Shown here: positions 15,476 to 57,349 of the stretch, one piece after another
Numbering within the stretch: the first letter of the stretch is position 1
How the letters are laid out: every line of letters begins with the position of its first letter
Assembly: GCA_002269645.1 (NCBI GenBank)
Contig: NIVC01001829.1
Span: 169,104-233,103, forward strand
Length of the DNA stretch: 64,000 bases
Source: Macrostomum lignano
Lineage: Eukaryota
Reading direction: 5' to 3'
Made by a program: the position numbers and the translations under genes
Notes under the pieces: generated by a model
Told to the model about the DNA's origin: nothing
Database searches by the model: none
The model's input: the letters and a program-made list of their open reading frames with translations, nothing else

Positions 15476-17130
15476 GTGTCACTCCCTATATCTCACTCGC
15501 TCTATGTTACTTTCTCTATGCCACTCTCCGTGGCACCCTTTTTGTGTCACTCTCTGTATGACACTCTTTCTATATCACTCTCTCTCTATGTCAATCTCTC
15601 TTTATCACTCTCTCCATGTCACTTTCTTCATGTCACTCTCTCCATGTCACTCTTTCCATGCCACTCTCACTATGTCATTCTCTCCATATCACTCTTTCCA
15701 TGCCACTCTCTCCATGTCACTCTATCCATGTCACTCTCTCTATGTCACTCTCTCTATGTCACTCTCTCCATGTCACTCTATCCATGTCACTCTCTCCATG
15801 TCACTCTTTCCATGTCACTCTCACTATGTCATTCTCTCCATATCACTCTTTCCATGCCACTCCCTCCATGTCACTCTATCCATGTCACTCTTTCCATGTC
15901 ACTCTCACTATGTCACTCTCTCCATATCACTCTTTCCATGCCACTCTCTCCATGCCACTCTATCCATGTCACTCTCTCTATGTCACTCTCTCTATGTCAC
16001 TCTCTCTATGTCACTCTATCCATGTCACTCTTTCCATGCCACTCTCTCCATGTCACTCTATCCATGTCACTCTCTCTATGTCACTCTCTCTATGTCACTC
16101 TCTCTATGTCACTCACTCTATGTCACTCTATCCATGCCACTCTCTCCATGTCACTCTTTCTATGTCACTCTCACTATGTCATTCTCTCCATATCACTCTT
16201 TCCATGCCACTCCCTCCATGTCACTCTATCCATGTCACTCTTTCCATGTCACTCTCACTATGTCATTCTCTCCATATCACTCGTTCCATGCCACTCTCTC
16301 CATGTCACTCTATCCATGTCACTCTCTCTATGTCACTCTCTCCATATCACTCTTTCCATGCCACTCTCTCCATGTCACTCTATCCATGTCACTCTCTCTA
16401 TGTCACTCTCTCTATGTCACTCTCTCTATGTCACTCTATCCATGTCACTCTTTCCATGTCACTCTAACTATGTCATTCTCTCCATATCACTCTTTCCATG
16501 CCACTCTCTCCATGTCACTCTATCCATGTCACTCTCTCTATGTCACTCTCTCCATATCACTCTTTCCATGCCACTCTCTCCATGTCACTCTATCCATGTC
16601 ACTCTCTCTATGTCACTCTCTCCATATCACTCTTTCCATGCCACTCTCTCCATGTCACTCTATCCATGTCACTCTCTCTATGTCACTCTCTCTATGTCAC
16701 TCTCTCTATGTCACTCTCTCTATGTCACTCTCTCTATGTCACTCTCTCCATATCACTCTTTCCATGTCACTCTTTCCATGCCACTCTCTCCATGTCACTC
16801 TATCCATGTCACTCTCTCTATGTCACTCTCTCCATGTCACTCTTTCCATGTCACTCTCACTATGTCATTCTCTCCATATAACTCTTTCCATGCCACTCTC
16901 TCCATGTCACTCTATCCATGTCACTCTCTCTATGTCACTCTCTCCATATCACTCTTTCCATGCCACTCTCTCCATGTCACTCTCTCTCTATGTCACTCTC
17001 TCTATGTCACTCTCTCCATGTCACTCTCTCCATGTCACTCTCTCTATGTCACTCTTTCTATATCACTCTCTCCATGTCACTCTCTCTCTCTCTCTATGTC
17101 TCTCTCTCACTCTATGTCACTTTTTCTGAC
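15476..17130. repeat. 14-bp minisatellite ((C/T)ATGTCACTCTCTC)
   Basis: TGTCAC recurs at 16681, 16695 and 16709; source of the 579-aa and 541-aa pseudo-ORFs. Confidence 0.95.
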
Positions 17131-17717
17131 TCCGTGTCACTCTCCAGCCTTCTTTACTTCACTCTCCGTATCTTTACCAGTCACTCTCTCCGCCATATTG
17201 TTGCCGGCCTCCTAAACTGCACTTGAAAATTTCTAACCACACAGAATCCACTACTTGGCCCACGGGAGGGCTTCTGAAATGTGCCAAAGTCTTTGATAGT
17301 GGCGGCTTAGGCTGAAATTCTAGTCCTAAAGATTTACGCCACCAAGAGGGGGTAGTCAAGAGGGGAGGCACTTAAAAGAAAGTTTTTAATGTCTTTTTCG
17401 CTCCTCCCTTGCAAGGGAAGCCTCCAAAACGACTTTAGATCCTGCCATTAAATGCAACAGCAGCTTCACCAAAGCAAGCGCTTTATTAGGCTAGTAAACG
17501 TCTTGAGAATCGTAAAACCTTAGCTAGCAGTTATTAAACTGAAGTTATGTCTATGGGCTGACTCTGGCGTCTGTTATTTCACTCATACAGTCGATGTTGA
17601 ACGCCTCTTAGCAGAAAATACTCAGTTCGGATTTTTGCTTGTTTAGACAACATCGAGTTGTTAAACTTCGCGCAGAAGTTTTACAAGTTCTGAACTAAAA
17701 ACAGGAACAAACAGACA

Positions 17718-19823
17718 ATGGCAAAGTCCAGCGCCAAAGGTGAGGAGGTGATGGAGCAGCTCTCGGTGCAGAAGCAGGTTGTCATAGCCGACTTCATCGC
17801 CAGGCAGGAGACGCTGCAACCGCCGATTTTCTTTGACATGCCGCGCACCGAGCAAGTGCAGTCTGCCGACGTTGGACACTCGCTCCGGGACATGATCAGC
17901 TGTCCTGAAGGCTTCTTCGGCATCGACCATCCCAACACGTCTTGGCTCATCAACCTGCTGAAGGACACTTCGGAGTGGCGGCTTCAGAAGGCGCTGCTGT
18001 CGCTTCGGACCAGGCCGCTGTTCGAGAGCAACAAATACTATCAGGTGATCGACCGGCCGAGCTACTACTGGGGCGAGGCCGCCTCCATGGACAAGCCAGT
18101 GTTCAACAACAAGGCAATGCTCTACCTGAACTCGTTCGGCGTCGCGCTGTACCTGAAAGCCGAGACTGGCTGTTTGAAACTCGCCTCGGCAAAGTCGGGC
18201 AAGAACTATCTAGTTAACGTGACCGCTCCGCAGTTTGCCTCGTTTGTGCACGACAGCGAGTACGACTTGGTGCGCTTCCAGTTTGACTTCCTCTGCATCA
18301 AGCGCGAGTACTATCAGGGCCTGCACTATCTGGCTCTGGCCGGTTGGAACCCGTCCAACACGACCCTGCTGACTTACCGGCGCAAGTACTACCAGTTCGG
18401 CGTGCCCTTCACCGACTGGATCGATGTGCTGCGCTACGTACTTGAGCGCAGGCCGTCCATCAACGTGGCTGGTCTTGTAGAGAAGATGTTCAACCTGCAG
18501 TACGTTGTCAGCCAGGCCTACAACTTCAACATGGGCCTGCTCAAAGAGGTCGGCAAAGTGATGATGGAATCATTCGAGCTAAAAGAGCTGACCAGACACA
18601 ATTTCAACAACCCTACCAAGCTGGGTAACTATGCCGGTCGGAAGGTACTGAAAAACAAAGACGTGCCGGTGCCGGATGAGTACGCTACAGTGTTCTCCGA
18701 CAAGGATGGCAAGCCGAAGAACCCCGTCCGACCCGTGGTGCCGAATATCATGTCGTACGTGCGCCGGCTGCTCACCTATCAGTACTACTTTGATGGCAAG
18801 CATCTGTTCGCCCTGCCGCAGATTCTCAGAGCCGTTCTCTGTTTCAAGCAGCACGACTTCTTCGTCATCTCACAGACGGTGAAGAGCTCGGCGGAGACCG
18901 ACTCGACTGGCATGCACCGGCTGTACATCGATCCCATCATCTTCCAGCTGAACTACTTCCTCAATCTGAAGTCGGACGGTATGTACCTGCGACACAAGCA
19001 GTGGTCCAGCCACGCCACCAGCGCAGAAAGCGACGGCATCACGGAAGAGGAGCGAGCCTGGGTCTACCGCTTCGACACCATCAACTGCCTCAGCCTGCTC
19101 ACCGGTCTGCTCCAGAACTGCCTCATCAAGAACATGTCCAGCGTCATTATTGAAGCCCTCTGCGACCTCATTGTTTTCATCATGGTTGACTCCGAGCTCA
19201 TCGAACCATTCTTCCGCTACTCCTACTATGACACCTACTTTGGCTTGACCAGCGTGATCAACTGCGTGCCGAACCTCATGTCCAAGACCGTCATGCGCCT
19301 GCTCAAGAAGGCTCCCATCACTTTGGTTAGCAACTTCGAGATCAGCCAAATCACCAGAATGTTCACCATGTCGTTCTGGAAGCTGACCCCAAATCAAATG
19401 GACGCGATTGTTGTGCCAAAGAATCTGGACGACATCACCGAATTCATCATCACTAAGAAGCGTCGGGTGAGCATGAAGATGGAAGGCCCGGCCACCGGCG
19501 AGGCCATGTCCGGTGCCAGCGCCGTGGGAGCGGCCGGTGGCATAACGATGTTCATCAGAAACTACGACGACATGACGGAGATCAGCGCGGCGGATGAGAA
19601 CGCCGAGCAGCCCGCCTCCGAGACCACGAAGAAGCAGGACGAGGAGCGCAAGCACGTGTACGAGTACAAGCACATGGAGATCGACGCCCGCTACAGTACC
19701 GTGTTCCCGCTGTACTTCGAGGGCCTCAACAAGGTGCAAATCAACTACGACGAGAACAAGATGTTCGACGACTGTGTGTTCGAATCCTACTCGCAGCACA
19801 TGCTGGCTCACCTGAAAAAGTGA
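17718..19823 (+). CDS. Intronless 701-aa protein of unknown function (no recognisable family)
   Basis: A 2.1-kb non-repetitive ATG-to-TGA ORF that is GC-richer than its AT-rich flanks. C/G-ending codons predominate (TTC, TAC, AAC, ATC, AAG, GAG) and the amino-acid composition is globular and aromatic-rich. A putative NLS (TKKRRV) is present. Polypyrimidine-AG acceptors lie upstream at ~17590 and ~17646. Confidence 0.85.
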   Translation: MAKSSAKGEEVMEQLSVQKQVVIADFIARQETLQPPIFFDMPRTEQVQSADVGHSLRDMISCPEGFFGIDHPNTSWLINLLKDTSEWRLQKALLSLRTRPLFESNKYYQVIDRPSYYWGEAASMDKPVFNNKAMLYLNSFGVALYLKAETGCLKLASAKSGKNYLVNVTAPQFASFVHDSEYDLVRFQFDFLCIKREYYQGLHYLALAGWNPSNTTLLTYRRKYYQFGVPFTDWIDVLRYVLERRPSINVAGLVEKMFNLQYVVSQAYNFNMGLLKEVGKVMMESFELKELTRHNFNNPTKLGNYAGRKVLKNKDVPVPDEYATVFSDKDGKPKNPVRPVVPNIMSYVRRLLTYQYYFDGKHLFALPQILRAVLCFKQHDFFVISQTVKSSAETDSTGMHRLYIDPIIFQLNYFLNLKSDGMYLRHKQWSSHATSAESDGITEEERAWVYRFDTINCLSLLTGLLQNCLIKNMSSVIIEALCDLIVFIMVDSELIEPFFRYSYYDTYFGLTSVINCVPNLMSKTVMRLLKKAPITLVSNFEISQITRMFTMSFWKLTPNQMDAIVVPKNLDDITEFIITKKRRVSMKMEGPATGEAMSGASAVGAAGGITMFIRNYDDMTEISAADENAEQPASETTKKQDEERKHVYEYKHMEIDARYSTVFPLYFEGLNKVQINYDENKMFDDCVFESYSQHMLAHLKK

Positions 19824-20249
19824 TTTTCACTCTTCATATTTATGGCCACCTCTCACCGGACACAGAAATATTTCTAATTTGAAAATTTACTTTTTCGCTA
19901 TTATTTTTCTCGAAGCTGCACCGGACTCTCCGGTTGGCAGCGGAAATACACACAGCTCAGCAACTCACCTCACTCGATCCGCGACCGGCAGGGATTGGCT
20001 TTCATTTTTCTCTCTCGCGTGAGCAAAGCGCGATAATAACAATACTCTTTGTTAAAAAGTTACTTTTTCACCGCACAATCCATCTTATTGTTTTGTGATA
20101 TGTACGGCCTATTTAACATACAAGTAGTTGCCTCCCTGTAAAATACTGTGCGAAACTTGCGAATAAACAGCTTTTTACTGTCTGAAACTGGTTTGAGTTG
20201 CGCGAAATTAATTCATCATTTACGAAGTAACAGGTAGGATGCTTCCAGG

Positions 20250-20527
20250 GGGCTGTAGCCTAGTGGTCAGAGCGTCGGACTCACGACTTGAAGGTCGGTG
20301 GGTTCGATTCCCGATCCAACTCGGAAAAATTTGTGTCCTTGAGCAAGACACTCAACTCTGCATTGCTTCAGTTCACCCATCTGTAAAATGGGTGCCAGCA
20401 TTAGCTGGGGTAATTGAGGGTGTGTGTGGCGAACCCCCAGTCCTTGGACTGAACAGCCGTACGCAGCCTTCAGATGCGCCGCGCAATAGCTGCGGCTGAG
20501 CTGTCAATTGTGTATCTGCCCATCATA
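20250..20527 (+). mobile_element. tRNA-derived CORE-type SINE with target-site duplication
   Basis: A box TAGCCTAGTGG and B box GGTTCGATTCC. The central TGTGTCCTTGAGCAAGACACTCAAC...GCTTCAGTTCACCCATCTGTAAAATGGG aligns with the MIR/CORE consensus as I recall it (TGTGACCTTGGGCAAGTCACTTAAC...GCCTCAGTTTCCTCATCTGTAAAATGGG). The direct repeat CTTCCAGG flanks the element at 20242-20249 and 20528-20535. Confidence 0.8.
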
Positions 20528-23549: not shown

Positions 23550-24609
23550 TCAGGGAACTTGACTGAAGAAATATCGAATTTCGGTCAGCGACATGGAGTT
23601 GTTAGCGACTGCAACGGCTCTGACGATCCCTTCCATGAAGGAGTCCACTTTATTTTAGCAATTCGCGTGATGAGTTGTCCGCCTTCCGGTGACCGATTAG
23701 GAGTTTGAAGCAGTCCAACTGGGTAGACTGGCTCAGGTGGCCGCTGTAGCTGTTCAAGAAGTGGCCATCTACATAGAACTCGACCTGTTTTAGAGTGTTC
23801 GACAGCTGCAGATTGGCAGTCATGCCGACGTCCACCCATGCGGATGAGCTGTTCGGCAGGGCGCCCAAGTCAGTGCAGAACCACAGAAACGGCAGCGACT
23901 TTCCTCCGGTGTCGAAGAACAATCGATTAGCTTTATCAAATTCCCACAGGTGCGGCCCGAATTTTGTGAGATTGGCGCAATCGATGGCTTCCAGAAGTGG
24001 CTGCACTTTCGGAGTCCGTTTGAATCGAATCAGCCAGGTGAAGGAGGCGTTCGGGAGAATGAATCGACTGTCGTTTAGCAGAGCGTAGGATGTTCGGCCA
24101 TCGAATTTGGCGCCTTCGTCGGTCCACTTCAAGTTGATGCTCTCCAGTCGGTGATCTCGGACTCTCGCTGTGGTGTCATTCTGGCACACCAGGTTGCTGA
24201 ACCGGCTGCTCCCACCCGCCAGCCAGACTCCGATGAAACGATCGCTAAGCGATGATGCATCACAGCTCGCCAGAGCCTTGATGCGATAAATCAAGCACTG
24301 ATAGTTGTTCGAAGATTGCTTAGCAATGTCCCGACAGACAGCCTGATAGTGAAAGATGGAGCAGATGCTGGATTGTTTGCTCCATTGAGCAACCAAGTCG
24401 TCGTCTGGCGGCTCTCGACTGTGGATTCTGCGGTGCAGCTGCATTACACAGGCCGGCTCGCTTGCGACTGAGTACAGACGCTCGATGGCCCACTTCTCAT
24501 CGCTGCACTGGCTGGAGTACTTGCAGTACTTTAGTTTGCAGTTGGCGGTTGCCGATACCGACTGAACCGTTGTCAAAGTTGATAGAAAAAATAGAAATAT
24601 TAATAACAT
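23550..24609 (-). CDS. Secreted protein with a PAN/apple-like N-terminal region and a LamG/concanavalin-A-like (pentraxin-type) jelly-roll domain; 1-nt frameshift near the 3' end
   Basis: Signal peptide MLLIFLFFLSTLTTVQSVSA. LamG-like motifs include AKFDGRTSYALL, SFTWLIRFK, WVDVGMT, VEFYVDG and LLIG. Removing one T from the T4 run at 23653-23656 extends the ORF into NKVDSFMEGIVRAVAVANNSMSLTEIRYFFSQVP*, a typical LamG ending (F.G.I..V...N..LS..EI). Confidence 0.75.
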
Positions 24610-31250: not shown

Positions 31251-34200
31251 ATGGCGGTTTCAGGTCAAAACCAGTTGCTCCGGGGTACCGTGAAGCTGGT
31301 ATGTAATTAATTTGTCAAACAATTCTGAATTATTTTGAATGATTATGAACTGACTTAATAACTTTATAATGAAGACACCAAGCTTTGTCGATATTATTGT
31401 GTAGGCTTACATAAAAACAGTGTTTTATTAGTTAATTTTATGTCTACAAATTGTTTAAACGACTTGCAAAAAACCTTTATTGGCCTTGCCAATAGTCAAT
31501 TCAATCTGGCATCATTGTTGATTGTTGGATGATGTTTTAAAGGTCCTTAGTTAGAGTTTTATCAGTTGGCATTTTTTATTTTAATAACTGCATTATTAAT
31601 ATTAACTGCATAACATTTTCTAGAAAAATTAATATTGATTTTATGCATGCAAGGAGGAACAAGGACAGAATAGGAGGAACAATCCAAATGTCAACACAAC
31701 AATTGCCATTTATGGGATTTGCAATTGAGCTGATACATAGAGTCTAAGCCTATTGAAAGACACACTTTTTAGTATTCAGTATGCAACTATACAAGTGAAT
31801 TGCATATAATTCAAGACATGAATGAGAAAACAAGACTTTTATTTTTTATTTTTTTATATTTTAATATTTTTTTAGTTCTAGCCACTGTCAAAAAGATGTC
31901 CAAAGTATGCCAGAGTTTTTTGGGCAAATTTTATGTGTATACCAAGTATGCCTTAAAGTAGGCCATGTCAAATTTTTTTTGTTTCTATTCCTACTACCTT
32001 TTAACTGCTTGCCTTTTTCTTTGAAGTGTTCTAGGCCCTTACCTTCTGTTACAGAAACAGGAAAATACTTTTTTCTACTTTTCAATATCTTTGTATATAT
32101 CTTTTTGTATGCCAAATGCAACTTTTTAAAATTCAAGCATCCCAAATATGCATGCCCATGAGCTATGAAGGGCTAATATATGCTAGAAAATTATGGCTTA
32201 TAGGATACTTTCTTGACTATAAAGTGCTAAGGGCCTAGTTGTTTTGTGACAAATCATTTTAATAACAAATAGTCATTTTGGTGACAGTTTCTTCTATAAT
32301 AGACACTTTACTTTTGGTGAAAAATGAAAGATTTGGTGATTATAGTCATTTTAATGATAAGAGACACTTCATAATATCAGTTCATAATTATTTAAATTAG
32401 ATTTATTTTATATATATTTGAAAATTCTGTTGAAAAGTATAATGATTTATAGCATTTTTCAAGCAAATTGAGCCTAGGAAGAAGCAATTTAATTTTTAAT
32501 AGGAGAATCAAGCTATTGAAGACTTGTTTTTCATTGTCTATGGCCTGAAAGAAGGGTCTATAGAGCAACCAATTTGAGAATTCAGGTGCACTATTAATCC
32601 TTTCCATAGTTGTATAAGCCTTAGACCATAGAAAATAATATATTTCATTAGACAAACATAGATATAGCCAATAAAGAATTTAGCAAGCAGAGCAATAACA
32701 AAAGTTTTGCTATAGCCCAAGATGCAGTGGATAAGCATTGTGAGAAACACAATTGTTCTTGGCTTATACTGTATGCTATAGTTTTGTCTGTTACTGTTTT
32801 GATTGGTTTGTCTAAAATCAAAAAGTTAATGTCAATCATTTTTTGATATGCCATCTATTTAGACATTACTTCAGTAAAGTTATCCATGAAAGATATTCAA
32901 GCACTCTGAAATTTTAATTGCTTGATTCTCCTAACAAGGATTCAATTGCTTGCTCCTAGGCTTAATGAGCTTAAAAAATGCTATATTAATATTTGTATTT
33001 GGGTAATTTGAAAAAAAATCAATCTAATAATATTGTTTTTGTGTAAATAATTTTGAATTTTCCTTGAATATTTAGACTTAAACCATAAACAAATAGACAA
33101 TCTTTATCACAAAATGCCAAATCACAAGAAGAACCAAATTTTTACCAGATTTGGAAAACATACAAATTTAAAATATTGCAACTATAACAGTAAATAAACA
33201 AAATTAAATGTAACGATACTTTACCATATAAGAAAATATCTAAACTTTTAGGCTCATAATTGAAAGGATGATTTTTCTATTTGTAACTACAATGGCTATT
33301 GCCAAATAGGTCTTTTTTATTGTCACCAAAATGATTTTAGACACAAAGTTTAAATATTAGACTCTAAAAAGCCTATGGCTATGTCCATTAGTTTTTTTGC
33401 TTATTTATTTATTTTATAATAGACCTATATATCACAGAACTTTTGGCAAAATATAGTAGATGTAAATAGGCTATAAGAAAGGTTTTGAGATATGGCTATG
33501 GATTTAATATTAATATAAAAAAAATTAGGTTATGGCAGAACTCTAATAATATAACATTTAAAATGATGCCTTTTGCCTGAGAATTCCAGCATATAGAAGC
33601 CTTATTAGTGCAGACAAAATGGTATGCAATACAGCATATCACATATACAGCATATACAGCAATACAGCATATTCTCTGGGTAGAGAATTGAACCCCCGAC
33701 CTCCCAGTCGAGACTTTGATGCTCTGACCACTAGGCTACAATCTTGCCACTTTAATCTGTGTCTGTGATATAATTACAACCCATATTTATCCCATTGCCC
33801 AATTAGATCCTATCAGGCGACTCCCTGATCATCAGGGACAGGCCTCGTGGCGGCCCGCCGCAGGAGTGGAACTGCGGCCTGACCAGTATTCAGGCGCCTC
33901 GACTTGGGCGACGTCTGGCTTCTGGTGAAGTGACCAAAGACGAGCCGTGGGCTTATGAGTCTAGGGAGTATCTGAGGCGCCTGGTTGGTAAAGAGGTGCT
34001 GTTCGCTTGCGAGACCATTGTTGGCGGCACTGGGAATAAGAAATATTATGGCGTGCTCTACGATAGGTGAGTCTGACTGATTGTTGAAAGTCTGGGCTTG
34101 TGTTATATTTCTAAAGCTATCGTATCTGCTCTTGAGGCCTTTTTATCCTGCATTTTCCTCCTATCTTCCTGAAGTTTCTCCTATCTCTCTGAAGTTTCCT

Positions 34201-37200
34201 CCTATCTCTCTGAAGCTTCCTCCTATCTTCCTGAAGTTTCTCCTATCTCTCTGAAGTTTCCTCCTATCTCTCTGAAGCTTCCTCCTATCTTCCTGAAGTT
34301 TCTCCTATCTCTCTGAAGTTTCCTCCTATCTCTCTGAAGTTTTCTCCTATCTTCCTGAAGTTTCCTCCTATCTCTCTGAATTTTCCTTCTATCTCTGAAG
34401 TTTCCTTCTATCTCTCTGAAGTTTCCTTCTATCTCTCTGAAGTTTCCTCCTATCTTCCTGAAGTTTCCTTCTATCTCTCTGAAGTTTCCTTCTATCTCTC
34501 TGAAGTTTCCTCCTATCTTCCTGAAGTTTCCTCCTATCTCTCTGAATTTTCCTTCTATCTCTCTGAAGTTTCCTTCTATCTCTCTGAAGTTTCCTTCTAT
34601 CTCTCTGAAGTTTCCTTCTATCTCTCTGAAGTTTCCTCCTATCTTCCTGAAGTTTCCTTCTATCTCTCTGAAGTTTCCTATCTTGCTGAAGTGTCCTCTT
34701 GTTTTTCAGAAGATTTTCTACCTTCTATCTGCCTGAAGTTTCTCTCCGTTTTCCTGAAGTACCTTCTACTCTCTGGACTGAAGACCTACCTTACTGACAG
34801 TAGTACATATAGTATTATTTAAAACTCACCCACAGAGTGGAACCAGAATCCGAGCGAGTGAACATGAACGAGGCTTTGGTTCGCGAAGGTCTTGCCGAAG
34901 TTCGCCGTACAGGCGGTGGCGGTGGCGGCGGCCCCTCAGGGTCTGACCAGATGAACCAGCTGGGGGCCCTGGAAGACCAGGCCAAAGCCGATGGCAAAGG
35001 CAAATGGAGCCAGACTGAACCAGCCGCAAATCATGTTCGAAACGTTGTCTGGAAGGTTGACAATCCCAGACTGTTTGTTGACTCGCACAAGCAGCGACCG
35101 TTGAATGCTATTATTGAGCACGTTCGCGATGCCTGCACATATCGGGTGTTGATCGCGCTGCCTGATGCCTACTATAGCGTCTCATTTATGCTCAGCGGTG
35201 TTAAATCGCCTACTTTTAAACAGCCGCAACAGCAGCAGCAGCAACAGCAGCAGCAAGATGATGGAAACACGGGAGATTCAGCCGAACCCGGAACTCAGCA
35301 ACAGCAACAGCAGCAACAGGCTCAACCAATCGCTGAACCCTACGCTGAGGAGGCCAAGTTTTTTGTTGAAGCTCGCCTGCTGCAGCGCAATGTCCGGCTA
35401 GTATTGGAGACTGTCTCGGGTCAGAGTGTGGTTGGCTCCGTGCTGCATACCAATGGCAACATTGCCGAGATTCTGGTGCAGGAGGGCCTGGCTCGGTGCG
35501 TAGACTGGAGTATGGGAGTTGTTAGCCAGCCAGGAGCGGCGGTAAAGCTCAGACAGGCTGAGAGAGATGCCAAGAAGGCTAGGAGGAGACTGTGGAAGGT
35601 AAGTTCGTTTTTTAGACTTACAGTTCCTTGAATCTTTTATCGAAATCTTATGATTCAATTTTAATCAGTAATCCAAATTCCTGTTAATAACTTTTAATCC
35701 TAATCGCTTGAATCGGTTCTGATTGCCATGACTCTACAATTTTAGTCATCATGACCCAAACCTGACCCCCCATGAGTCCCATGACCCAATCCTGATCCGC
35801 ATGACCTCATTCTGATCCCATGACCCAATTCTGATCCCCATGACCCAATTCTGATCCCCATAGCCCAATCCTGATCCCCCATGACCCAATCCTGATCCGC
35901 ATGACCTCATTCTGATCCCATGACCCAATTCTGATCCCCATGACCCAATTCTGATCCCCATAGCCCAATCCTGATCCGCATTACCTCATTCTGATCCCAT
36001 GACCCAATTCTGATCCCATAGCCCAATCCTGATCCCCATGACCAAATCCTGATCCCCATGACCTCATACTGATCCCCATGACCTAATCCTGATACCCATG
36101 ACCCGATTCTGATCCCCATGACCTAATCCTGATACCCATGACCCGATTCTGATCCCCATGACCTCATTTTGATCCCAATGACCCTATCGTGATCCCCATG
36201 ACCCGATTCTGATCCCCATGACCTCATTCTGATCCCTATGACCCAGTCCTGATCCCCATGACCCGATCCTGATCTCCATGACCCAGTCCTGATCCCTATG
36301 ACCCATTCCTGATCCCCATGACCCATTCCTGATCCCCATGACTCAGTCCTGATCTCCATGACTCAGTCCTGATCTCCATGACCCAATCCCGATCCCCATG
36401 ACCCAGTCCTGATCCCCATGACCCAGTCCTGATCCCCATGACCTCATTCTGATCCCTATGACCCAGTCCTGATCTCCATGAACCATTCTTGATCCCATGA
36501 CCCATTCCTGATCCCCATGACCCGATCCTGATCTTCATGACCCAATCCTGATCCCCATAACCTCATTCTGATCCCCATGACCCGATCCCGATCCCCATGA
36601 ATCGTGACTCAATCCTGATCCCAATGAGTCGTGACTCAATCCTTACTTATATGTTTCCATTGTTTAATCTTCACGAGTCCATAATTTCCAAACTCCCAAA
36701 CAGGACTACGTGGAAACGGCCGGCAGCGGGGGCGGCATCGGGCATAGCAACAAATCCGAGAAAGGTTTAAAATCTGGCGACAATATCGAAGGTCGCGTTG
36801 TAGAAGTTGGCAACGGCGATAGTTTAGTAGTGAAACGGCAGGACACAGGCGATTATGTGAAGCTGTTCTTGGCTTCCATTAGGCCGCCTCGAGCCAATGC
36901 TCCCGATGCTGATGGACAGAGGCCTAAGTAAGTCTTTTTTACGTTTCTTTATTAGAATATAATAATTTTGCCAATAGTGCCGGGACTATAGTAAATTAAA
37001 GATTGAAGAAATATCGTAAAGCAAAGGGTTTAATGGTTGGTTTCAAGGGTTGCTAGGGGTATATTTAAGGACATGGGTAGAGTAAGGTAGCAGGGGGTGA
37101 TTAAAGGACACTGGTATGGTAGGGTAGCAAGAGATAATTTAAGAACACTGGTAGAGTATGTTAGCAAGGGGTCAATTAAGTACACGAATAGGGTAGGGTA

Positions 37201-46300: not shown

Positions 46301-49300
46301 CAACTGCCCAGCAACGGAGTCGCAATTTAATTGTTTGAAAATTCCCTACGTAGATAAGGACGCTTTTGTTACAGAGCACAAGATTCTGATTGCTCTGACA
46401 TCGAATGGTCCATTGAAAAGTTATTGCTTTCGTAGGCTGACTTGTCTGCAGTCCAAGTATCAGCTGCACAGCCTGTTGAACGAATTGACTGAGAGTGCCG
46501 AGCAGAAACTGGTGCCTCATAGGGATTTCTATAATATTCGCAAGGTGGACAATCACATTCACGCTTCTTCGGCTATGAACCAGAAACACCTGCTCAAGTT
46601 CATCAAGCGATCGCTTAAGAAACATCCGGATGAGAAGGTTGGAAATTTTGATTTATGATTTTGACTGACGATTTCTAGTTGGATTACTGAAGATTTCTGA
46701 GGTGGATTACTGAAGATTTCTAGTTGGATTACTGAAGATTTCTGAGGTGGATTACTGAAGATTTCTGAGGTGGATTACTGAAGATTTCTAGAGTGGATTA
46801 CTGAAGATTTCTGAGGTGGATTACTGAAGATTTCTGAGGTGGATTACTGAAGATTTCTAGAGTGGATTACTGAAGATTTCTGAGGTGGATTACTGAAGAT
46901 TTCTGAGGTGGATTACTGACGATTTCTGAGGTGGATTACTGAAGATTTCTAGAGTGGATTACTGAAGATTTCTGAGATGGATTACTGACGATTTCTGAGG
47001 TGGATTACTGAAGATTTCTAGAGTGGATTACTGAAGAGTTCTAGAGTGGATTACTGAAGATTTCTGAGGTGGATTACTGAAGATTTCTAGAGTGGATTAC
47101 TGAAGATTTCTGAGATGGATTACTGACGATTTCTGAGATGGATTACTGACGATTTCTAGAGTGGATTACTGACGATTTCTGAGGTGGATTACTGACGATT
47201 TCTGAGATGGATTACTGAAGATTTCTAGAGTGGATTACTGAAGATTTCTAGAGTGGATTACTGAAGATTTCTGAGGTGGATTACTGAAGATTTCTGAGGT
47301 GGATTACTGAAGATTTCTGAGGTGGATTACTGAAGATTTCTGAGGTGGATTACTGAAGATTTCTAGAGTGGATTACTGAAGATTTCTGAGGTGGATTACT
47401 GAAGATTTCTGAGGTGGATTACTGAAGATTTCTAGAGTGGATTACTGAAGATTTCTGAGGTGGATTACTGAAGATTTCTAGAGTGGATTACTGACGATTT
47501 CTGAGGTGGATTACTGACGATTTCTGAGGTGGATTACTGAAGATTTCTAGAGTGGATTACTGAAGATTTCTGAGGTGGATTACTGAAGATTTCTAGAGTG
47601 GATTACTGAAGATTTCTGAGGTGGATTACTGAAGATTTCTGAGATGGATTACTGACGATTTCTGAGATGGATTACTGAAGATTTCTGAGGTGGATTACTG
47701 AAGATTTCTGAGGTGGATTACTGAAGATTTCTGAGGTGGATTACTGAAGATTTCTAGAGTGGATTACTGAAGATTTCTAGAGTGGATTACTGAAGATTTC
47801 TGAGGTGGATTACTGAAGATTTCTGAGGTGGATTACTGAAGATTTCTGAGGTGGATTACTGAAGATTTCTAGAGTGGATTACTGAAGATTTCTGAGGTGG
47901 ATTACTGAAGATTTCTGAGGTGGATTACTGAAGATTTCTAGAGTGGATTACTGAAGATTTCTGAGGTGGATTACTGAAGATTTCTAGAGTGGATTACTGA
48001 AGATTTCTAGAGTGGATTACTGAAGATTTCTAGAGTGGATTACTGAAGATTTCTGAGGTGGATTACTGAAGATTTCTGAGATGGATTACTGACGATTTCT
48101 GAGATGGATTACTGAAGATTTCTAGAGTGGATTACTGAAGATTTCTGAGGTGGATTACTGAAGATTTCTAGAGTGGATTACTGAAGATTTCTGAGGTGGA
48201 TTACTGAAGATTTCTGAGGTGGATTACTGAAGATTTCTAGAGTGAATTACTGAAGATTTCTAGAGTGGATTACTGAAGATTTCTAGAGTGGATTACTGAA
48301 GATTTCTAGAGTGGATTACTGAAGATTTCTGAGGTGGATTACTGAAGATTTCTAGAGTGGATTACTGAAGATTTCTAGAGTGGATTACTGAAGATTTCTA
48401 GAGTGGATTACTGAAGATTTCTAGAGTGGATTACTGAAGATTTCTAGAGTGGATTACTGACGATTTCTGAGGTGGATTACTGAAGATTTCTGAGGTGGAT
48501 TACTGAAGATTTCTGAGGTGGATTACTGAAGATTTCTGAGGTGGATTACTGAAGATTTCTGAGGTGGATTACTGAAGATTTCTGAGAGTGGATTACTGAA
48601 GATTTCTGAGATGGATTACTGAAGATTTCTGAGGTGGATTACTGAAGATTTCTGAGGTGGATTACTGAAGATTTCTGAGAGTGGATTACTGAAGATTTCT
48701 AGAGTGGATTACTGAAGATTTCTAGAGTGGATTACTGAAGATTTCTGAGGTGGATTACTGAAGATTTCTGAGGTGGATTACTGAAGATTTCTGAGGTGGA
48801 TTACTGAAGATTTCTGAGGTGGATTACTGAAGATTTCTAGAGTGGATTACTGAAGATTTCTGAGGTGGATTACTGAAGATTTCTAGAGTGGATTACTGAC
48901 GATTTCTGAGGTGGATTACTGACGATTTCTGAGGTGGATTACTGAAGATTTCTAGAGTGGATTACTGAAGATTTCTGAGGTGGATTACTGAAGATTTCTA
49001 GAGTGGATTACTGAAGATTTCTGAGGTGGATTACTGAAGATTTCTGAGATGGATTACTGACGATTTCTGAGATGGATTACTGAAGATTTCTGAGGTGGAT
49101 TACTGAAGATTTCTGAGGTGGATTACTGAAGATTTCTGAGGTGGATTACTGAAGATTTCTAGAGTGGATTACTGAAGATTTCTAGAGTGGATTACTGAAG
49201 ATTTCTGAGGTGGATTACTGAAGATTTCTTAGGTGGATTACTGAAGATTTCTGAGGTGGATTACTGAAGATTTCTAGAGTGGATTACTGAAGATTTCTGA

Positions 49301-52300
49301 GGTGGATTACTGAAGATTTCTGAGGTGGATTACTGAAGATTTCTAGAGTGGATTACTGAAGATTTCTGAGGTGGATTACTGAAGATTTCTAGAGTGGATT
49401 ACTGAAGATTTCTGAGGTGGATTACTGAAGATTTCTGAGATGGATTACTGACGATTTCTGAGATGGATTACTGAAGATTTCTAGAGTGGATTACTGAAGA
49501 TTTCTGAGGTGGATTACTGAAGATTTCTGAGGTGGATTACTGAAGATTTCTAGAGTGAATTACTGAAGATTTCTAGAGTGGATTACTGAAGATTTCTAGA
49601 GTGGATTACTGAAGATTTCTAGAGTGGATTACTGAAGATTTCTGAGGTGGATTACTGAAGATTTCTAGAGTGGATTACTGAAGATTTCTAGAGTGGATTA
49701 CTGAAGATTTCTAGAGTGGATTACTGAAGATTTCTAGAGTGGATTACTGAAGATTTCTAGAGTGGATTACTGACGATTTCTGAGGTGGATTACTGAAGAT
49801 TTCTGAGGTGGATTACTGAAGATTTCTGAGGTGGATTACTGAAGATTTCTGAGGTGGATTACTGAAGATTTCTGAGGTGGATTACTGAAGATTTCTGAGA
49901 GTGGATTACTGAAGATTTCTGAGATGGATTACTGAAGATTTCTGAGGTGGATTACTGAAGATTTCTGAGGTGGATTACTGAAGATTTCTGAGAGTGGATT
50001 ACTGAAGATTTCTAGAGTGGATTACTGAAGATTTCTGAGGTGGATTACTGAAGATTTCTAGAGTGGATTACTGAAGATTTCTGAGATGGATTACTGAAGA
50101 TTTCTAGAGTGGATTTGTGAAGATTTCTGAGGTGGATTACTGAAGATTTCTAGAGTGGATTACTGAAGATTTCTGAGGTGGATTACTGAAGATTTCTAGA
50201 GTGGATTACTGAAGATTTCTGAGGTGGATTACTGAAGATTTCTGAGGTGGATTACTGAAGATTTCTAGAGTGGATTACTGAAGATTTCTGAGGTGAATTA
50301 CTGAAGATTTCTGAGGTGGATTACTGAAGATTTCTGAGGTGGATTACTGAAGATTTCTGAGGTGGATTACTGAAGATTTCTGAGATGGATTACTGAAGAT
50401 TTCTAGAGTGGATTTGTGAAGATTTCTGAGGTGGATTACTGAAGATTTCTAGAGTGGATTACTGAAGATTTCTGAGGTGGATTACTGAAGATTTCTAGAG
50501 TGGATTACTGAAGATTTCTAGAGTGGATTACTGAAGATTTCTGAGGTGGATTACTGAAGATTTCTGAGGTGGATTACTGAAGATTTCTGAGGTGGATTAC
50601 TGAAGATTTCTAGAGTGGATTACTGAAGATTTCTGAGGTGGATTACTGAAGATTTCTGAGGTGGATTACTGAAGATTTCTAGAGTGGATTACTGAAGATT
50701 TCTGAGGTGGATTACTGAAGATTTCTAGAGTGGATTACTGAAGATTTCTGAGGTGGATTACTGAAGATTTCTGAGGTGGATTACTGAAGATTTCTGAGGT
50801 GGATTACTGACGATTTCTGAGGTGGATTACTGAAGATTTCTGAGGTGGATTACTGAAGATTTCTGAGGTGGATTACTGAAGATTTCTGAGGTGGATTACT
50901 GAAGATTTCTAGAGTGGATTACTGAAGATTTCTAGAGTGGATTACTGAAGATTTCTAGAGTGGATTACTGAAGATTTCTAGAGTGGATTACTGAAGATTT
51001 CTAGAGTGGATTACTGAAGATTTCTAGAGTGGATTACTGACGATTTCTGAGGTGGATTACTGAAGATTTCTGAGGTGGATTACTGAAGATTTCTGAGGTG
51101 GATTACTGAAGATTTCTGAGGTGGATTACTGAAGATTTCTGAGGTGGATTACTGAAGATTTCTAGAGTGGATTACTGAAGATTTCTAAGGTGGATTACTG
51201 ACGATTTCTGAGGTGGATTACTGAAGATTTCTAGAGTGGATTACTGAAGATTTCTAGAGTGGATTACTGAAGATTTCTAGAGTGGATTACTGAAGATTTC
51301 TAGAGTGGATTACTGAAGATTTCTGAGGTGGATTACTGAAGATTTCTAGAGTGGATTACTGAAGATTTCTAGAGTGGATTACTGAAGATTTCTAGAGTGG
51401 ATTACTGACGATTTCTGAGGTGGATTACTGAAGATTTCTAGAGTGGATTACTGAAGATTTCTAGAGTGGATTACTGAAGATTTCTGAGGTGGATTACTGA
51501 AGATTTCTAGAGTGGATTACTGAAGATTTCTAGAGTGGATTACTGAAGATTTCTAGAGTGGATTACTGAAGATTTCTGAGGTGGATTACTGAAGATTTCT
51601 AGAGTGGATTACTGAAGATTTCTAGAGTGGATTACTGAAGATTTCTAGAGTGGATTACTGAAGATTTCTGAGGTGGATTACTGAAGATTTCTAGAGTGGA
51701 TTACTGAAGATTTCTGAGGTGGATTACTGAAGATTTCTAGAGTGGATTACTGACGATTTCTGAGGTGGATTACTGAAGATTTCTAGAGTGGATTACTGAA
51801 GATTTCTAGAGTGGATTACTGAAGATTTCTGAGGTGGATTACTGACGATTTCTGAGGTGGATTACTGACGATTTCTGAGGTGGATTACTGACGATTTCTG
51901 AGGTGGATTACTGAAGATTTCTAGAGTGGATTACTGACGATTTCTGAGGTGGATTACTGACGATTTCTGAGGTGGATTACTGAAGATTTCTAGAGTGGAT
52001 TACTGACGATTTCTGAGGTGGATTACTGAAGATTTCTGAGGTGGATTACTGAAGATTTCTAGAGTGGATTACTGAAGATTTCTAGAGTGGATTACTGAAG
52101 ATTTCTAGTTGGATTACTGAAGATTTCTAGAGTGGATTACTGAAGATTTCTAGTTGGATTACTGAAGATTTCTAGTTGGATTACTGAAGATTTCTAGTTG
52201 GATTACTGAAGATTTCTAGAGTGGATTACTGAAGATTTCTAGAGTGGATTACTGACGATTTCTGAGATGGATTACTGAAGATTTCTAGAGTGGATTACTG

Positions 52301-55300
52301 AAGTGGATTACCTGAGGATAGCTCCCTGAGGCACCTGAGGATATCTCACTGGGGCACCTGAGGATATCTCACTGAGGCACCTGAGGATATCTCACTGAAG
52401 CACCTGAGGATAGCTCACTGAAGCACCTGAGGATAGCTCACTGAGGCACCTGAGGATAGCTCACTGAGGCACCTGAGGATAGCTCACTGAGGCACCTAAA
52501 GAAATCTCACTGAGGCACCTGAGGATAGCTCACTGAGGCACCTGAGGATAGCTCCCTGAGGCACCTGAGGATAGCTCACTGAGGCACCTGAGGATAGCTC
52601 ACTGAGGCACCTGAGGATAGCTCACTGAGGCACCTGAGGATAGCTCCCTGAGGCACCTGAGGATATCTCACTGAGGCACCTGAGGATAGCTCACTGAGGC
52701 ACCTGAGGATATCTCACTGAGGCACCTGAGAATATCTCACTGATGCACCTGAGGATAGCTCACTGAGGCACCTGAGGATATCTCACTGAGGCACCTGAGA
52801 ATATCTCACTGAGGCACCTGAGGATAGCTCACTGAGGCACCTGAGGATAGCTCACTGAGGCACCTGAGGATAGCTCACTGAGGCACCTGAGGATAGCTCC
52901 CTGAGGCACCTGAGGATATCTCACTGAGGCACCTGAGGATAGCTCACTGAGGCACCTGAGGATAGCTCACTAAATGTCTCTAAAGAATGTGAAAAGCAGT
53001 TAATCATTAAAAATCGCAATATTTGTTAATCCCAGGTGTACGTAGACCGCAGCGGCGAGCTCCTATCGCTCAAGCAGATTTTCGAAGCCATGAAGATCAC
53101 GGACTACGATCTGAACATCGACATGCTGGATGTTCACGCCGATAGGCACACTTTCCAACGATTTGACAAATTCAATTCCAAGTACAACCCGCTGGGTAGG
53201 AACCACCTGAGGGAGGTGTTCCTAAAGACTGACAATCATATTGGCGGCAGGTTCTTTGCCGAGATCCTGCGCGAGGTGATGAACGACCTGAAGGAGTCGC
53301 GCTATCAGAATGCCGAGCTGAGGCTGTCAATCTACGGTAGGTCTGCCGACGAATGGGACAAATTGGCTCAGTGGGCACTGCACCACGGCCTGACCGAGTT
53401 CAACGACAATGTCCGCTGGATGATCCAGATTCCCCGCCTGTTCGATGTGTACCGTCGTCACGGCCAGTTGGACAATTTCCAGACATTTCTGGACAATTTA
53501 TTCCGGCCGCTGTTTGAGGCCACTATCGATCCGAGCTCGCATCCGCATCTGTTCGTGTTTATGCAGTCGGTCAGTTCACTGCTCCCGTGTTTTTATTCCG
53601 TGATGTGTATTTTCTAATCTCTGAAGTGAATTCTCAATCCCAGTGGGGAAATCCCAATTTCTGTTTAGAAATCCCAATTGCTATGGGGAAATCCCAGTTG
53701 CTTTAGGAAATCCCAATTACTGTGGGGAAACCCCAGTTACTGTGGGTGTGGGGAAATCCCTATTACTTTTGGGAAATCCATACTACTGTAGGGAAATCCC
53801 TGTTGCTGTGAGGAAATCCCTATTACTGTGGGAAATCCCTTTTTTCGTGGGGAAGTCTCTATTACCATGGGAAATTCCTTTTCTGTGGAGAAATCCCTAA
53901 TATTGTCGGAAAATCCCTATTACTGTGGGGAAATCCCGATTGCTGTGGGGAATTTCCTATTTCTGTCGAAATCCCTTTTGGTGTGAGGAAATCCCTATTG
54001 CTATGGGGAAATGCCAATTGATGTAGGTAGATCCCAATTACTTACTGTGGGTGAGAAAGTCCTTATTCTAAGTGGGAAATCCGAATCACTGAGTTGAAAA
54101 ATGCGAAACCATAAATTAAAGTGACAATCCATCTCTCATGCTATACCATCCGGGTTAACACGTGAATAAAATGAAAGCAACGTAGTAATCGCAGATTCCT
54201 GGCTAAATCGTAATCTTAAGCCAAACAAGCTGAACTGCAATACACTGCATTGTTTTGGCAGGTTGTCGCATTCGACTCAGTAGATGACGAGTCCAAGTCA
54301 GAGTCCGTGGTGTTCGATCACGATTCCCCGGAACCGGCAGAATGGACGGAGAGTCAGCGCAACCCGCCGTACGCTTACTACCTGTACTACCTGTACGCTA
54401 ACCTGGTGCCGCTGAACGCTCTGAGACGGGAGCGAGGCCTGCAACCGATCGTTCTCAGGCCGCACTGTGGCGAGGCTGGACCTGTGCATCATCTGGCAAC
54501 CGCCTTCTTGCTGGCTGACAATATTAGCCACGGCCTGCTGCTCAGAAAGGTAGCTCTGTTGCTTCTCAGTTGCTGGGCCAGCTTCCCAGATCCTCAGTTG
54601 CTGGGCCAGCCTCCCAGATCCCCAGTTGCTGGGCCAGCTTCCCAGATCCCCAGTTAATTGGCCAGCCTCCCAGATCCTCAGTTGGTGGGCCAGCCTCCCA
54701 GATCCCCAGTTGGTGGGCCAGCCTCCCAGATCCCCAGTTGCTGGGCCAGCCTCCCAGATCCCCAGTTGCTGGGCCAGCCTCCCAGATCCCCAGTTGCTGG
54801 GCCAGCCTCCTAGATCCCCAGTTGCTTGGCCAGCCTCCCAGATCTTCCAGTTGCTGGCCCACCAACCTCCCAGATCCTCAGTTGCTGGGCCAGCCTCCCA
54901 GATCCCCAGTTGCTGGGCCAGCCTCCCAGATCCCCAGTTGCTGGGCCAGCCTCCCAGATCCCCAGTTGCTGGGCCAGCCTCCTAGATCCCCAGTTGCTTG
55001 GCCAGCCTCTCAGATCTTCCAGTTGCTGGGCCAGCCTCCCAGATCTTCCAGTTGCTGGGCCACCAACCTCCCAGATCCTCAGTTGGTGGGCCACCAGCCT
55101 CCCAGATCCTCAGTTGCTGGGCCACCAGCCTCCCAGATCCTCAGTTGCTGGGCCACCAGCCTCCCAGATCCTCAGTTGCTGGGCCACCAGCCTCCCAGAT
55201 CCTCAGTTGCTGGGCCACCAGCCTCCTAGATCCTCAGTTGCTGGGCCAACAGCCTCCCAGATCCTCACTTGCTGGGCCACCAGCCTCCCAGATTCTCAGT

Positions 55301-57349
55301 TGCTGGGCCAGCCTCCCAGATCCCCAGTTGCTGGGCCAGCCTCCCAGATCCTCAGTTGCTGGTCCAGCCTCCCAGATCCCCAGTTGCTTGGCCAGCCTCC
55401 CAGATCCCCAGTTGCTGGGCCAGCCTCCCAGATCCCCAGTTGCTGGCCAGCCTCCCAGATCCCCAGTTTCTGGGCCAGCCCCCAGATCCCCAGTTGCTTG
55501 GCCAGCCTCCCAGATCTTCCAGTTGCTGGGCCACCAGCCTCCCAGATCCCCAGTTGCTGGGCCAGCCTTCCAGATCCCCAGTTGCTTGGCCAGCCTCCCA
55601 GATCTTCCAGTTGCTGGGCCACCAGCCTCCCAGATCCCCAGTTGCTGGGCCAGCCTCCCAAATCCCCAGTTGCTGGGCCAGCCTCCCAGATCCCCAGTTG
55701 CTGGGCCAGCCTCCCAGATCCCCAGTTGCTGGGCCAGCCTCCCAGATCCCCAGTTGCTGGGCCAGCCTCCCAGATCCCCAGTTGCTTGGCCAGCCTCCCA
55801 GATCTTCCAGTTGCTGGGCCACCAACCTCCCAGATCCTCAGTTGGTGGGCCACCAGCTTCCCAGATCCTCAGTTGCTGGGCCAGCCTTCCAGATCCTCAG
55901 TTGCTGGGCCACCAGCCTCCTAGATCCTCAGTTTCTGGGCCACCAGCCTGCCAGATCCTCAGTTGGTGGGCCACCAGCTTCCCAGATCTTCAGTTGCTGT
56001 GCCAGCCTCCCAGATCCTCGGTTGCTGCTCCATCACAACTTGTCCCTCACTGCACAGCGCAATGATATTCCCACGTTACAATTTTTACCCCCCTCTCGCC
56101 CGCAGGCACCGGTGCTGCAGTACCTGTACTACCTGGCCCAGGTGCCCATGGCCATGTCGCCGCTCTCCAACAACAGCCTGTTCCTGCCCTACAGCCGCAG
56201 TCCCTTGCCAGACTTTCACGCCAAAGGCCTGTGCGTGACGCTGAGCACGGATGATCCGCTGATGTTCCACTTCACCAAGGAGCCGCTGATGGAAGAGTAC
56301 TCTATCGCGGCCCAGGTGTGGAAGCTCACCAACACAGACATGTGCGAGCTGGCCAGGAACTCTGTAATCATGTCCGGATTTCCTCACGAAGTGAAGAAGC
56401 GTTGGCTCGGCCCGGCCTATCAACACGAAGGCGTCCTTGGCAACGATATTCGTTATACTAATCTGCCTAACGTTCGAGTGGCGTTTCGTTTCGAGAATCT
56501 GCTGCACGAATTGGCCCTGGTTACCACCGCTAATCCGAGGTCGAGAGCTCACAGCGGGCACAGCGGCTTGTCGGGTGGGTCCTGTGGCTGTTTGGGAAGA
56601 ATCAAGATGGGATGGGATGGGAAGAATCGGGATGGGATGGGAGGGGAAGAATCGGGATGGGATGTGAAGAATCTGGATGGGATGGGATGGGAAGAATCGG
56701 GATGGGATGGGATGGTAAGAATCGGGATGGGATGGGATAGGAAGAATCGGGATGGGATGGGATGGGAAGAATCGGGATGGAATGGGATGGTAAGAATCGG
56801 GATGGGATGGGAAGAATCGGGATGGGATGGGATGGGAGCGGAAGAATCAGGATGGGATGGGATGGGAATAATCAGGATGGGATGGGAAGAATCAGGATGG
56901 GGTGGGGTGGGAAGAATCAGGATGGGGTGGGAAGAATCAGGATGGGGTAGGAAGAATCAGGATGGGATGGGAAGAATCAGGATGGGATGGGAAGAATCAG
57001 GATGGGATGGGAAGAATCAGGATGGGGTGGGAAGAATCAGGATGGGATGGGAAGAATCAGGATGGGATAGAGAGAATCGGGATGGGATGGGAGGGGAAGA
57101 ATCAAGATGGGATAGAATGGGATGGGAAGAATCAGGATGGGATAGAGAGAATCGGGATGGGAGGGGATGGGAAGAATCAGGATGGGATGGAAAGAATCAG
57201 GATGGTGGGAAGAATCAGGTGAGATAGTAATCACTATTTTGAAGGCCTATGACTTAATTACATTCATCCCCATTTGCCAATCCGCAGTGCCAGCCGCAAT
57301 GTCCACAAGGACAAAGTCAATGAGCGTGCTGTTCGAGGATGAGGGATAA
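43363..57349 (+). CDS. AMPD: AMP deaminase (AMPD2-like), ~857 aa
   Basis: Exons 43363-43991, 46046-46637, 53036-53569, 54262-54549, 56106-56574 and 57288-57349, all GT-AG with matching phase. Motifs include [26 protein letters not shown] (Zn-binding HxH), [77 protein letters not shown] and [10 protein letters not shown]. The last short exon is less certain. Confidence 0.96.
44044..45534 (-). mobile_element. Non-autonomous LTR retroelement (TRIM-like), 1.49 kb, in AMPD intron 1
   Basis: The LTRs at 44044-44318 and 45258-45534 have TG...CA ends and are identical except for a G/T homopolymer. On the minus strand, a PBS-like TGGTGAGCCCGAC (45256-45244) lies 1 nt after the 5' LTR, a PPT-like GGGGGGAG precedes the 3' LTR, and TATAAATA lies inside the LTR. 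AGTA flanks both sides. The GC-rich repetitive interior has no recognisable retroviral protein. Confidence 0.85.
45535..45902. repeat. (AGT)n microsatellite, interrupted by the LTR element (left remnant ~44005-44043)
   Basis: Trinucleotide run giving the poly-S and poly-L pseudo-ORFs. Confidence 0.95.
46660..52310. repeat. 5.6-kb 23-bp satellite (CTGAG/CTAGA + GTGGATTACTGAAGATTT), AMPD intron 2
   Basis: About 245 units of two interspersed main variants. Confidence 0.98.
52310..52972. repeat. 23-bp minisatellite (CTGAGGCACCTGAGGATAGCTCA), AMPD intron 2
   Basis: CTGAGGCACC recurs at 52441 and 52464. Confidence 0.95.
53640..54060. repeat. Degenerate GGGAAATCCC-containing repeat, AMPD intron 3
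   Basis: Recurring GGGAAATCCC(T/A)ATT motif. Confidence 0.75.
54565..56030. repeat. ~28-bp minisatellite (GCCTCCCAGATCCCCAGTTGCTGGGCCA), AMPD intron 4
   Basis: GCCTCCC recurs at 54721 and 54749; source of the PASQIPSCW ORFs. Confidence 0.95.
56598..57220. repeat. 20-bp purine-rich minisatellite (GATGGGATGGGAAGAATCAG), AMPD intron 5
   Basis: Visible tandem array. Confidence 0.92.

Follow-up and report, generated by a model that had tools for sequence, protein, structure and literature searches.

A single-exon Macrostomum lignano gene, probably functional, in a flatworm-restricted multigene family

The closest described counterpart of the gene analyzed here is the Mlig-sperm1 (Mlig020950) family of free-living flatworms, which is flatworm-restricted, has no Pfam match and contains a large disordered fraction (PMC5816591). 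In Macrostomum lignano, that family comprises 35 genes in 14 clusters; its protein is 635 aa long, and its conservation is focused on a first domain, for which a single beta sheet and several helices are described. We analyzed a window of 64,000 nucleotides of M. lignano DNA (assembly GCA_002269645.1, contig NIVC01001829.1, positions 169,104 to 233,103 of the forward strand), in which a 2.1-kb uninterrupted open reading frame (ORF) encodes a protein of 701 aa, here called P0001. An initial annotation, made from the sequence alone, had recorded this frame as an orphan and had offered a domesticated viral gene, a horizontal transfer, a retrogene or a lineage-specific gene family as candidate origins. 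Our analysis favors the last of these. With a probability of roughly 0.85, P0001 is encoded by an intact, functional, single-exon nuclear host gene that belongs to a flatworm-restricted multigene family.

The P0001 family is likewise confined to flatworms, lacks a Pfam match and has a large disordered fraction. In M. lignano it counts about 14 paralogue groups, its conservation too is focused on the first domain, and both families have members enriched in germline or irradiation-sensitive cells. The two differ in membership. Mlig-sperm1 genes were assigned by BLASTP at E<=1e-15 to Mlig-SPERM1 (PMC5816591 Supplementary Table 4), and comparison by gene number found none of the 16 listed Mlig gene numbers in the P0001 family; none was recovered by phmmer. 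Mlig-sperm1 is also reported to be absent from parasitic flatworms, whereas the P0001 family has a monogenean member. Because the gene lists are disjoint and the distribution in parasites differs, the P0001 family is distinct from Mlig-sperm1 at the BLAST level.

An intact reading frame, its copies and its relatives

The reading frame lies exactly where it had first been placed (Table 1). Tandem Repeats Finder (TRF; score >=30) reported only a 19-nt trace inside it, indicating that the ORF is non-repetitive, as claimed; a frame of 701 codons open in non-repeat DNA is far beyond chance. Since an in-frame stop lies upstream at 17691, the ATG is the sole possible start, and its context (ACAATGG) is favorable. 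GC contents at the first, second and third codon positions (GC1, GC2 and GC3) are 0.51, 0.34 and 0.82. The richness in aromatic residues noted at the outset amounts to 5.4% Tyr and 5.8% Phe (11.2% together), and the KKRRV motif, also noted then, is found at aa 580-584.

P0001 is encoded residue for residue on three M. lignano contigs of the same assembly (982, 233 and 184 kb). Across a compared stretch of 22 kb, the other two contigs are collinear with the window locus, with an overall identity of 92-96%, and the two annotated neighbors of the gene are host genes. Since an identical protein is found in three collinear long host contigs, contamination or misassembly is not an issue. To judge from these alignments, the three copies would be compatible with homeologues or alleles of a hidden polyploid.

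Copy number and dN/dS had both been proposed as checks in the initial annotation, and both bear on whether the frame is functional. In pairwise comparison, the coding sequences (CDS) of the three locus copies differ by 6, 11 and 5 nt, corresponding to 11 inferred substitutions. All 11 are synonymous (P ~5e-8 under neutrality, with 78% of sites nonsynonymous), and unique flanking DNA among the copies has diverged by roughly 1-4%. Between P0001 and its paralogue P0002, nonsynonymous divergence (dN) is 0.136, synonymous divergence (dS) is about 2 (saturated) and dN/dS is 0.068; once P0052, the orthologue of P0002 in a second species, is included, dN/dS is 0.04-0.12 in every pair. These codon comparisons show strong purifying selection on P0001, over both long and recent timescales.

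P0001 is not the orphan that it was first taken for, as we found a paralogue of 78% identity and some 20 relatives at greater distance. When 1.84 billion (1.84e9) representative proteins were searched exhaustively with phmmer, 23 relatives were returned, and every one with a species name is from M. lignano apart from a single protein of the monogenean Protopolystoma xenopodis. A planarian relative is also on record: the family member Mlig032244 has a homologue in Schmidtea (Smes) at E=1e-20 and is placed in the class 'flatworms' (PMC5816591 Supplementary Table 2). A literature search on this planarian homologue, dd_Smes_v1_1986, found nothing relevant. Three further full-length lineages (Mlig004562, Mlig021828 and P0003, the last from a Logan sample) are 32-39% identical to P0001, and about 18 relatives match just its residues ~60-260. 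Each paralogue occupies one fixed locus in two to four copies, as expected of this polyploid genome. A word-index search found P0002 only, a profile search (A2) returned P0001 and P0002, and another (A3) returned nothing, which we ascribe to the limits of these methods. The flatworm origin of all species-named phmmer relatives and the domain profiles that they share bear out the proposal of a lineage-specific gene family.

P0002 is the product of BOX15_Mlig028329 (PAA60666.1/PAA80552.1), a 'hypothetical protein' that is 78% identical to P0001 over its full length, has the same architecture and is encoded in a single exon with a GC3 of 0.69. Its locus (Ank/SAM gene, PRA1, X, ETF-alpha) differs from that of P0001, and at the DNA level the resemblance of the two loci does not extend beyond the CDS and ends at the stop codon. 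P0002 lies on the same strand between single-exon PRA1, about 1.5 kb upstream, and ETF-alpha, about 0.85 kb downstream in contig L001; the spacing of this cluster (L001/L002, 7897-16764) could fit a gene cluster resolved by spliced-leader (SL) trans-splicing. P0052, encoded on a Logan contig of SRR30276804, shares 88.6% identity with P0002 and 79.0% with P0001. Because P0052 is nearer to P0002 than to P0001, the P0001/P0002 duplication predates the split from this second species, which is presumably another Macrostomum. Contigs L006, L007 and L013 (SRR30276804 / SRR30276815) carry the P0002 orthologue and the P0003 lineage, and no P0001 orthologue was recovered among the contigs of these two samples.

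Introns are found in other members of the family. Mlig004562, which among the distinct full-length paralogues is the one nearest to P0001, contains three introns of 89-90 nt, all canonical GT-AG, with donors GTGAGT, GTGGGT and GTAAGT and acceptors CAG, TAG and CAG, respectively, and introns are also present in Mlig011744. Single-exon genes are not uncommon locally: the distant member Mlig014962 and the unrelated neighbor PRA1 each consist of one exon. Given the introns in its members, this is therefore an ordinary host family that bears spliceosomal introns.

No Pfam domain was supported in any member, and the consensus of weak matches over 22 members showed no recurring family. The automatic UniProt names attached to older gene models of the family (P0004, P0028, P0032, P0035, P0042, P0044, P0045, P0009 and P0015) include Mab-21, ORF12, MPN, Bromo, Integrase catalytic, Sm, TPR, Fungal_trans and ANK_REP, none of which was reproduced by Pfam at E<=1. 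Among the auto-named models, the sole real Pfam match is to a fragment of Exo70, within a fused model. P0007, P0018, P0023 and P0045 are models fused with adjacent genes. A Mab-21 or cGAS-like nucleotidyltransferase was likewise rejected, as neither P0004 nor P0025 gave a Mab-21 match even at E<=1.

Origin of the gene

The alternative that survives best concerns origin only and is compatible with P0001 being a functional host gene. It is possible, though we lean against it, that the single-exon P0001/P0002 branch arose as an ancient retrogene of a spliced family mRNA and was later duplicated and kept functional. P0001, P0002 and the orthologue from the second species each have a single exon or a continuous ORF, whereas Mlig004562 is interrupted by three introns and M. 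lignano genes have 4-5 introns on average (PMC5816591 Supplementary Table 1); the confinement of locus homology to the CDS points the same way. On the other side, we found no A-run of at least 8 nt, no target-site duplication (TSD) and no other flanking direct repeat at P0001. Such scars would be expected to have decayed at this age, with dS saturated. Moreover, Mlig014962 and PRA1 are also single-exon, and intron loss, or intron gain elsewhere, explains the data equally well. Of the retrogene proposed in the initial annotation, a contrast in exon number was observed, which either loss or gain of introns would produce, and a poly(A) or TSD remnant was not found.

It is improbable that the whole family goes back to an ancient viral or transposon gene, domesticated from a donor lineage that has yet to be sampled and therefore without a detectable homologue today. 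The lack of cellular homologues outside flatworms and of a known fold is the pattern expected of such a capture, and a gag/protease-like ORF lies 42 kb away, which shows only that such elements exist here. Against it, P0001 had 0 matches in PHROGs, 107 pattern matches in IMG/VR contigs yielded 0 confirmed by tblastn, and the Big Fantastic Virus Database (BFVD) gave no significant structural match. Pfam detected no capsid, polymerase, integrase, transposase, reverse transcriptase or other transposable-element (TE) domain in any member. No terminal repeats flank the gene, its neighbors are host genes, and the flanking repeats are chance 8-11-mers only. The members sit at fixed loci in two to four copies, and introns are present among them. 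That the family is spread over Macrostomorpha, Tricladida and Monogenea implies that it was inherited vertically.

We give very little credence to the idea that P0001 is a non-functional frame, for instance a decaying duplicate, that has survived by chance or codon bias. The P0001 copy itself is without direct expression evidence, as such a frame would be, but 701 codons are open in three copies and two paralogues, 0 of 11 substitutions are nonsynonymous, and dN/dS remains low throughout. A recent bacterial or archaeal transfer, or assembly contamination, can be dismissed: the single exon and a GC3 above that of the surrounding DNA would suit it, but there are no prokaryotic relatives among the 1.84e9 representatives, 185,579 prokaryotic genomes or NCBIfam, the gene lies in three collinear copies on long host contigs with eukaryotic neighbors, its paralogues have introns, and a eukaryotic Kozak context, an AATAAA and a splice acceptor are present.

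On the evidence of these searches and comparisons, P0001 is apparently neither an endogenous viral gene nor horizontally acquired, nor is it the ORF of a TE. The viral candidate of the initial annotation is countered by the database searches, the host neighbors and the introns of relatives, and the horizontal transfer by the missing prokaryotic homologues, the collinear host contigs and the same introns. With both candidates removed, P0001 would be an ordinary, vertically inherited, lineage-restricted host gene.

Domain architecture, candidate transcript signals and a proposed role

We modeled P0001 with AlphaFold2 from a 21-sequence trimmed family alignment and obtained a predicted template modeling score (pTM) of 0.67. 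An earlier run from a 7-sequence alignment gave a mean predicted local distance difference test (pLDDT) of 41 and was left out of the fold search. The boundaries of the domains are given in Table 1, together with the other features of the gene.

The N-terminal domain defines the family. Its hidden Markov model (HMM) matches all of the ~20 distant relatives (E 1e-14 to 1e-38), and in the AlphaFold2 model it forms six short strands and about eight helices. Family alignments of this domain contain the motifs VPxFF..HPNTxWL, YFQIxDxP, LYLTPLGxAIYLK, GD...F, YRR and FxDWLD. Three near-invariant aspartates, D112, D183 and D233, are each placed by the model at a strand edge, and Q109, P114 and Y145 are also conserved. 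In the model, the three aspartates probably build a metal- or ligand-binding pocket, which may be catalytic. Two segments of the domain, LYLTPLGxAIYLK...LL and IAxRRExF...LLxxGWxP, resemble the ankyrin pattern TPLHxAxxxG...LLxxGA, and each maps to a strand plus a helix pair in the model. An ankyrin repeat was rejected: the 22 members gave no Ank match in Pfam at E<=5, Foldseek gave no significant match to the many ankyrin structures in the PDB, and the modeled domain is alpha/beta with a sheet, not a solenoid.

In the helical middle domain, pLDDT is 75-92 over aa 340-390 and 440-500, and aa 520-555 are also reasonably confident. Its core (about aa 440-500; W..R.D..NC.SLL...QN) forms a second HMM block that is collinear in many distant relatives. 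The C-terminal HMM gives strong matches only to P0001, P0002, P0003, P0025, P0026, P0027 and P0028. The tail holds an RRxS site within KKRRVS, a GEAMSGxSAxGAxG motif, an acidic patch and a terminal helix (EER.HV..YK..E.D.RY), and RRxS, GEAMSGxSAxGAxG...EI..DE, the acidic patch and the helix are conserved among paralogues that are only ~38% identical. Because these short motifs are conserved at such low overall identity, the tail probably carries docking or regulatory motifs. KKRRV had been described as resembling a nuclear localization signal; by its sequence, the RRxS basic site would match the consensus of basophilic kinases no less well. Disorder is predicted for residues 264-339 and 582-640. 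The Gly/Ala and acidic linker described at the outset (~aa 589-640) is accordingly disordered, but it is not loose low-complexity sequence, as its motif is among those conserved.

Foldseek found no significant match for the model in the PDB (best E 0.49) or in BFVD (best E 0.069, TM 0.08), and the capsid or other viral structural protein suggested at first gained no support from either database. Recurrent Foldseek matches to YeaZ-type proteins and to the LtpM glycosyltransferase had E values of 2-5, were not significant and were not used. Searches of PDB sequences with the single protein and with a profile gave only noise at E>0.2. P0001 has no signal peptide, and its sole hydrophobic segment (aa 472-490; Kyte-Doolittle 1.95) lies inside the predicted helical bundle. 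For these reasons P0001 is most likely a soluble intracellular protein.

Table 1. Positions in the window of the P0001 gene, its encoded domains and its candidate transcript signals
Feature	Position	Strand	Remarks
Candidate 3' splice acceptor, polypyrimidine plus AG, TTTTTGCTTGTTTAG	17632..17646	+	cis or SL-trans-splice site
Putative 5' untranslated region (UTR), 71 nt if splicing occurs at 17646	17647..17717	+	inferred; without upstream ATG
Single-exon CDS, 701 aa (P0001)	17718..19823	+	ATG start; member of flatworm-restricted multigene family
Family-defining N-terminal alpha/beta domain, aa ~61-262	17898..18503	+	pLDDT 81-96
Low-confidence linker, aa ~263-339	18504..18734	+	pLDDT <50; conserved within full-length subfamily only
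Helical middle domain, aa ~340-580	18735..19457	+	
C-terminal tail, aa 581-701	19458..19820	+	full-length subfamily only; mostly pLDDT <50
Putative 3' UTR to AATAAA (20162-20167)	19824..20167	+	96-99% identity across three copies
Antisense ORF, 313 aa	18870..19811	-	codon-bias by-product, non-gene

The polypyrimidine-AG and the AATAAA that had been pointed out around the ORF were both located (Table 1). From the polypyrimidine tract to the ATG, the three locus copies are 100% identical, and differences begin just upstream. P0002 has an equivalent YTTTAG acceptor, TGCCATCTCTTTAG, 67 nt before its ATG, compared with 71 nt in P0001. Since the acceptor at 17646 is invariant in the three copies and has an equivalent at a similar distance in P0002, splicing or SL-trans-splicing there is plausible. 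In M. lignano, SL-trans-splicing affects about 30% of the genes (PMC8629364). When the 35-nt SL (PMC8629364) was compared with contigs L006, L007 and L013, no SL suffix of at least 10 nt was found.

A 73-nt tRNA-like sequence lies just 3' of the AATAAA (20250-20322, + strand), and a second, inverted copy, 82% identical, is found 13 kb away (33677-33740, - strand). ARAGORN called no tRNA at the first site, and Rfam tRNA scored 22.5 bits there, below the gathering score of 29. The sequence is probably the head of a tRNA-derived short interspersed nuclear element (SINE).

Expression records are available for paralogues of P0001. Mlig032244.g1 is listed as 'Neoblast, stringent', TRANSSPLICED, with trans-splicing and strong sensitivity to irradiation (PMC5816591 Supplementary Table 2), and a gene model containing Mlig021828g3/g4 is among the testes-specific differentially expressed genes (PMC12896417 Table S10). 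In the second species, P0003 and P0052 are encoded on ORF-centered contigs of 2.2-2.5 kb, which look like assembled transcripts.

We propose that the P0001 gene probably has a promoter of its own, and that its mRNA may undergo splicing or SL-trans-splicing at the conserved acceptor, 71 nt before the ATG. The protein, probably intracellular, combines the N-terminal domain that defines the family, a helical middle domain that is partly shared, and a mostly disordered tail with short conserved motifs, found only in the full-length subfamily. The three-aspartate pocket of the N-domain would bind a metal or ligand and might be catalytic, and the tail would supply regulatory or docking motifs, including the RRxS site. 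By extrapolation from the neoblast-enriched and testes-specific paralogues, the most likely setting of P0001 action is in proliferating cells or the germline.

Several points weigh against this picture and against the assignment of P0001 to a functional, flatworm-restricted family. No Logan contig with P0001 was found, and the P0001 gene and Mlig028329 are absent from the expression supplements of three papers, among the entries listed there. The expression of two distant paralogues, taken as an analogy, need not predict that of the P0001 gene. The flatworm restriction, as read from the search output, would hold for the species-named matches, the Logan and ENA relatives carrying no species label. 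The biochemical function is wholly inferred, with no match in Pfam, in the PDB or by fold; the three aspartates could have a structural role, and in the model the hydrophobic helix at aa 472-490 leaves membrane association formally open.

The advance is a modest one: an uncharacterised flatworm-wide family is delineated, whose defining domain has no known fold match and carries an acidic triad. More speculatively, and we think this unlikely, the N-domain might be an undescribed alpha/beta fold with an invariant three-aspartate pocket that serves as a flatworm-specific enzyme or metal module in stem and germ cells, is possibly a distant sister of Mlig-sperm1 and has been kept in parasitic Neodermata. 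Such a fold would represent a lineage-restricted molecular function absent from the hosts. Families of this kind (compare Mlig-sperm1) are a likely seat of flatworm-specific stem-cell and reproductive biology, and members that are kept in parasites and absent from vertebrates are of general interest to parasitology.

Antisense frame and genomic setting

The antisense ORF within the P0001 gene is in phase with the sense codons. It is open because TTA, CTA and TCA codons, of which the sense ORF has 4 in total, are scarce. Shuffling of synonymous codons gave a longest antisense run of 309+-78, compared with 317 observed, and 38% of shuffles equaled or exceeded the observed value; in P0002 the antisense open run is just 103. 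These results rule out the antisense ORF as a gene. They agree with the initial annotation, which had attributed the 313-aa frame to third-position bias and had given its length exactly.

No second copy of the family was found within the 64-kb window. The window is crowded with minisatellites, forming about 18 large arrays with units of 14-39 nt. A 14-nt array of 115 copies (15477-17086) adjoins the upstream region of the P0001 gene and yields spurious ORFs of up to 579 aa, and a 23-nt array of 245 copies extends over 5.6 kb (46664-52303). A 319-aa ATG-initiated ORF without a Pfam match (23650-24609, - strand) lies outside the tandem arrays.

Other coding segments on the + strand of the window are an SNase-domain exon at 34837-35631 (E 3e-17) and the C-terminal (last) exon of an AMP deaminase at 56031-57227 (E 4e-70). 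At 62163-63296 on the same strand, an ORF with a zf-CCHC motif and a retroviral-type aspartyl protease resembles the gag/protease region of a retroelement and is unrelated to P0001.

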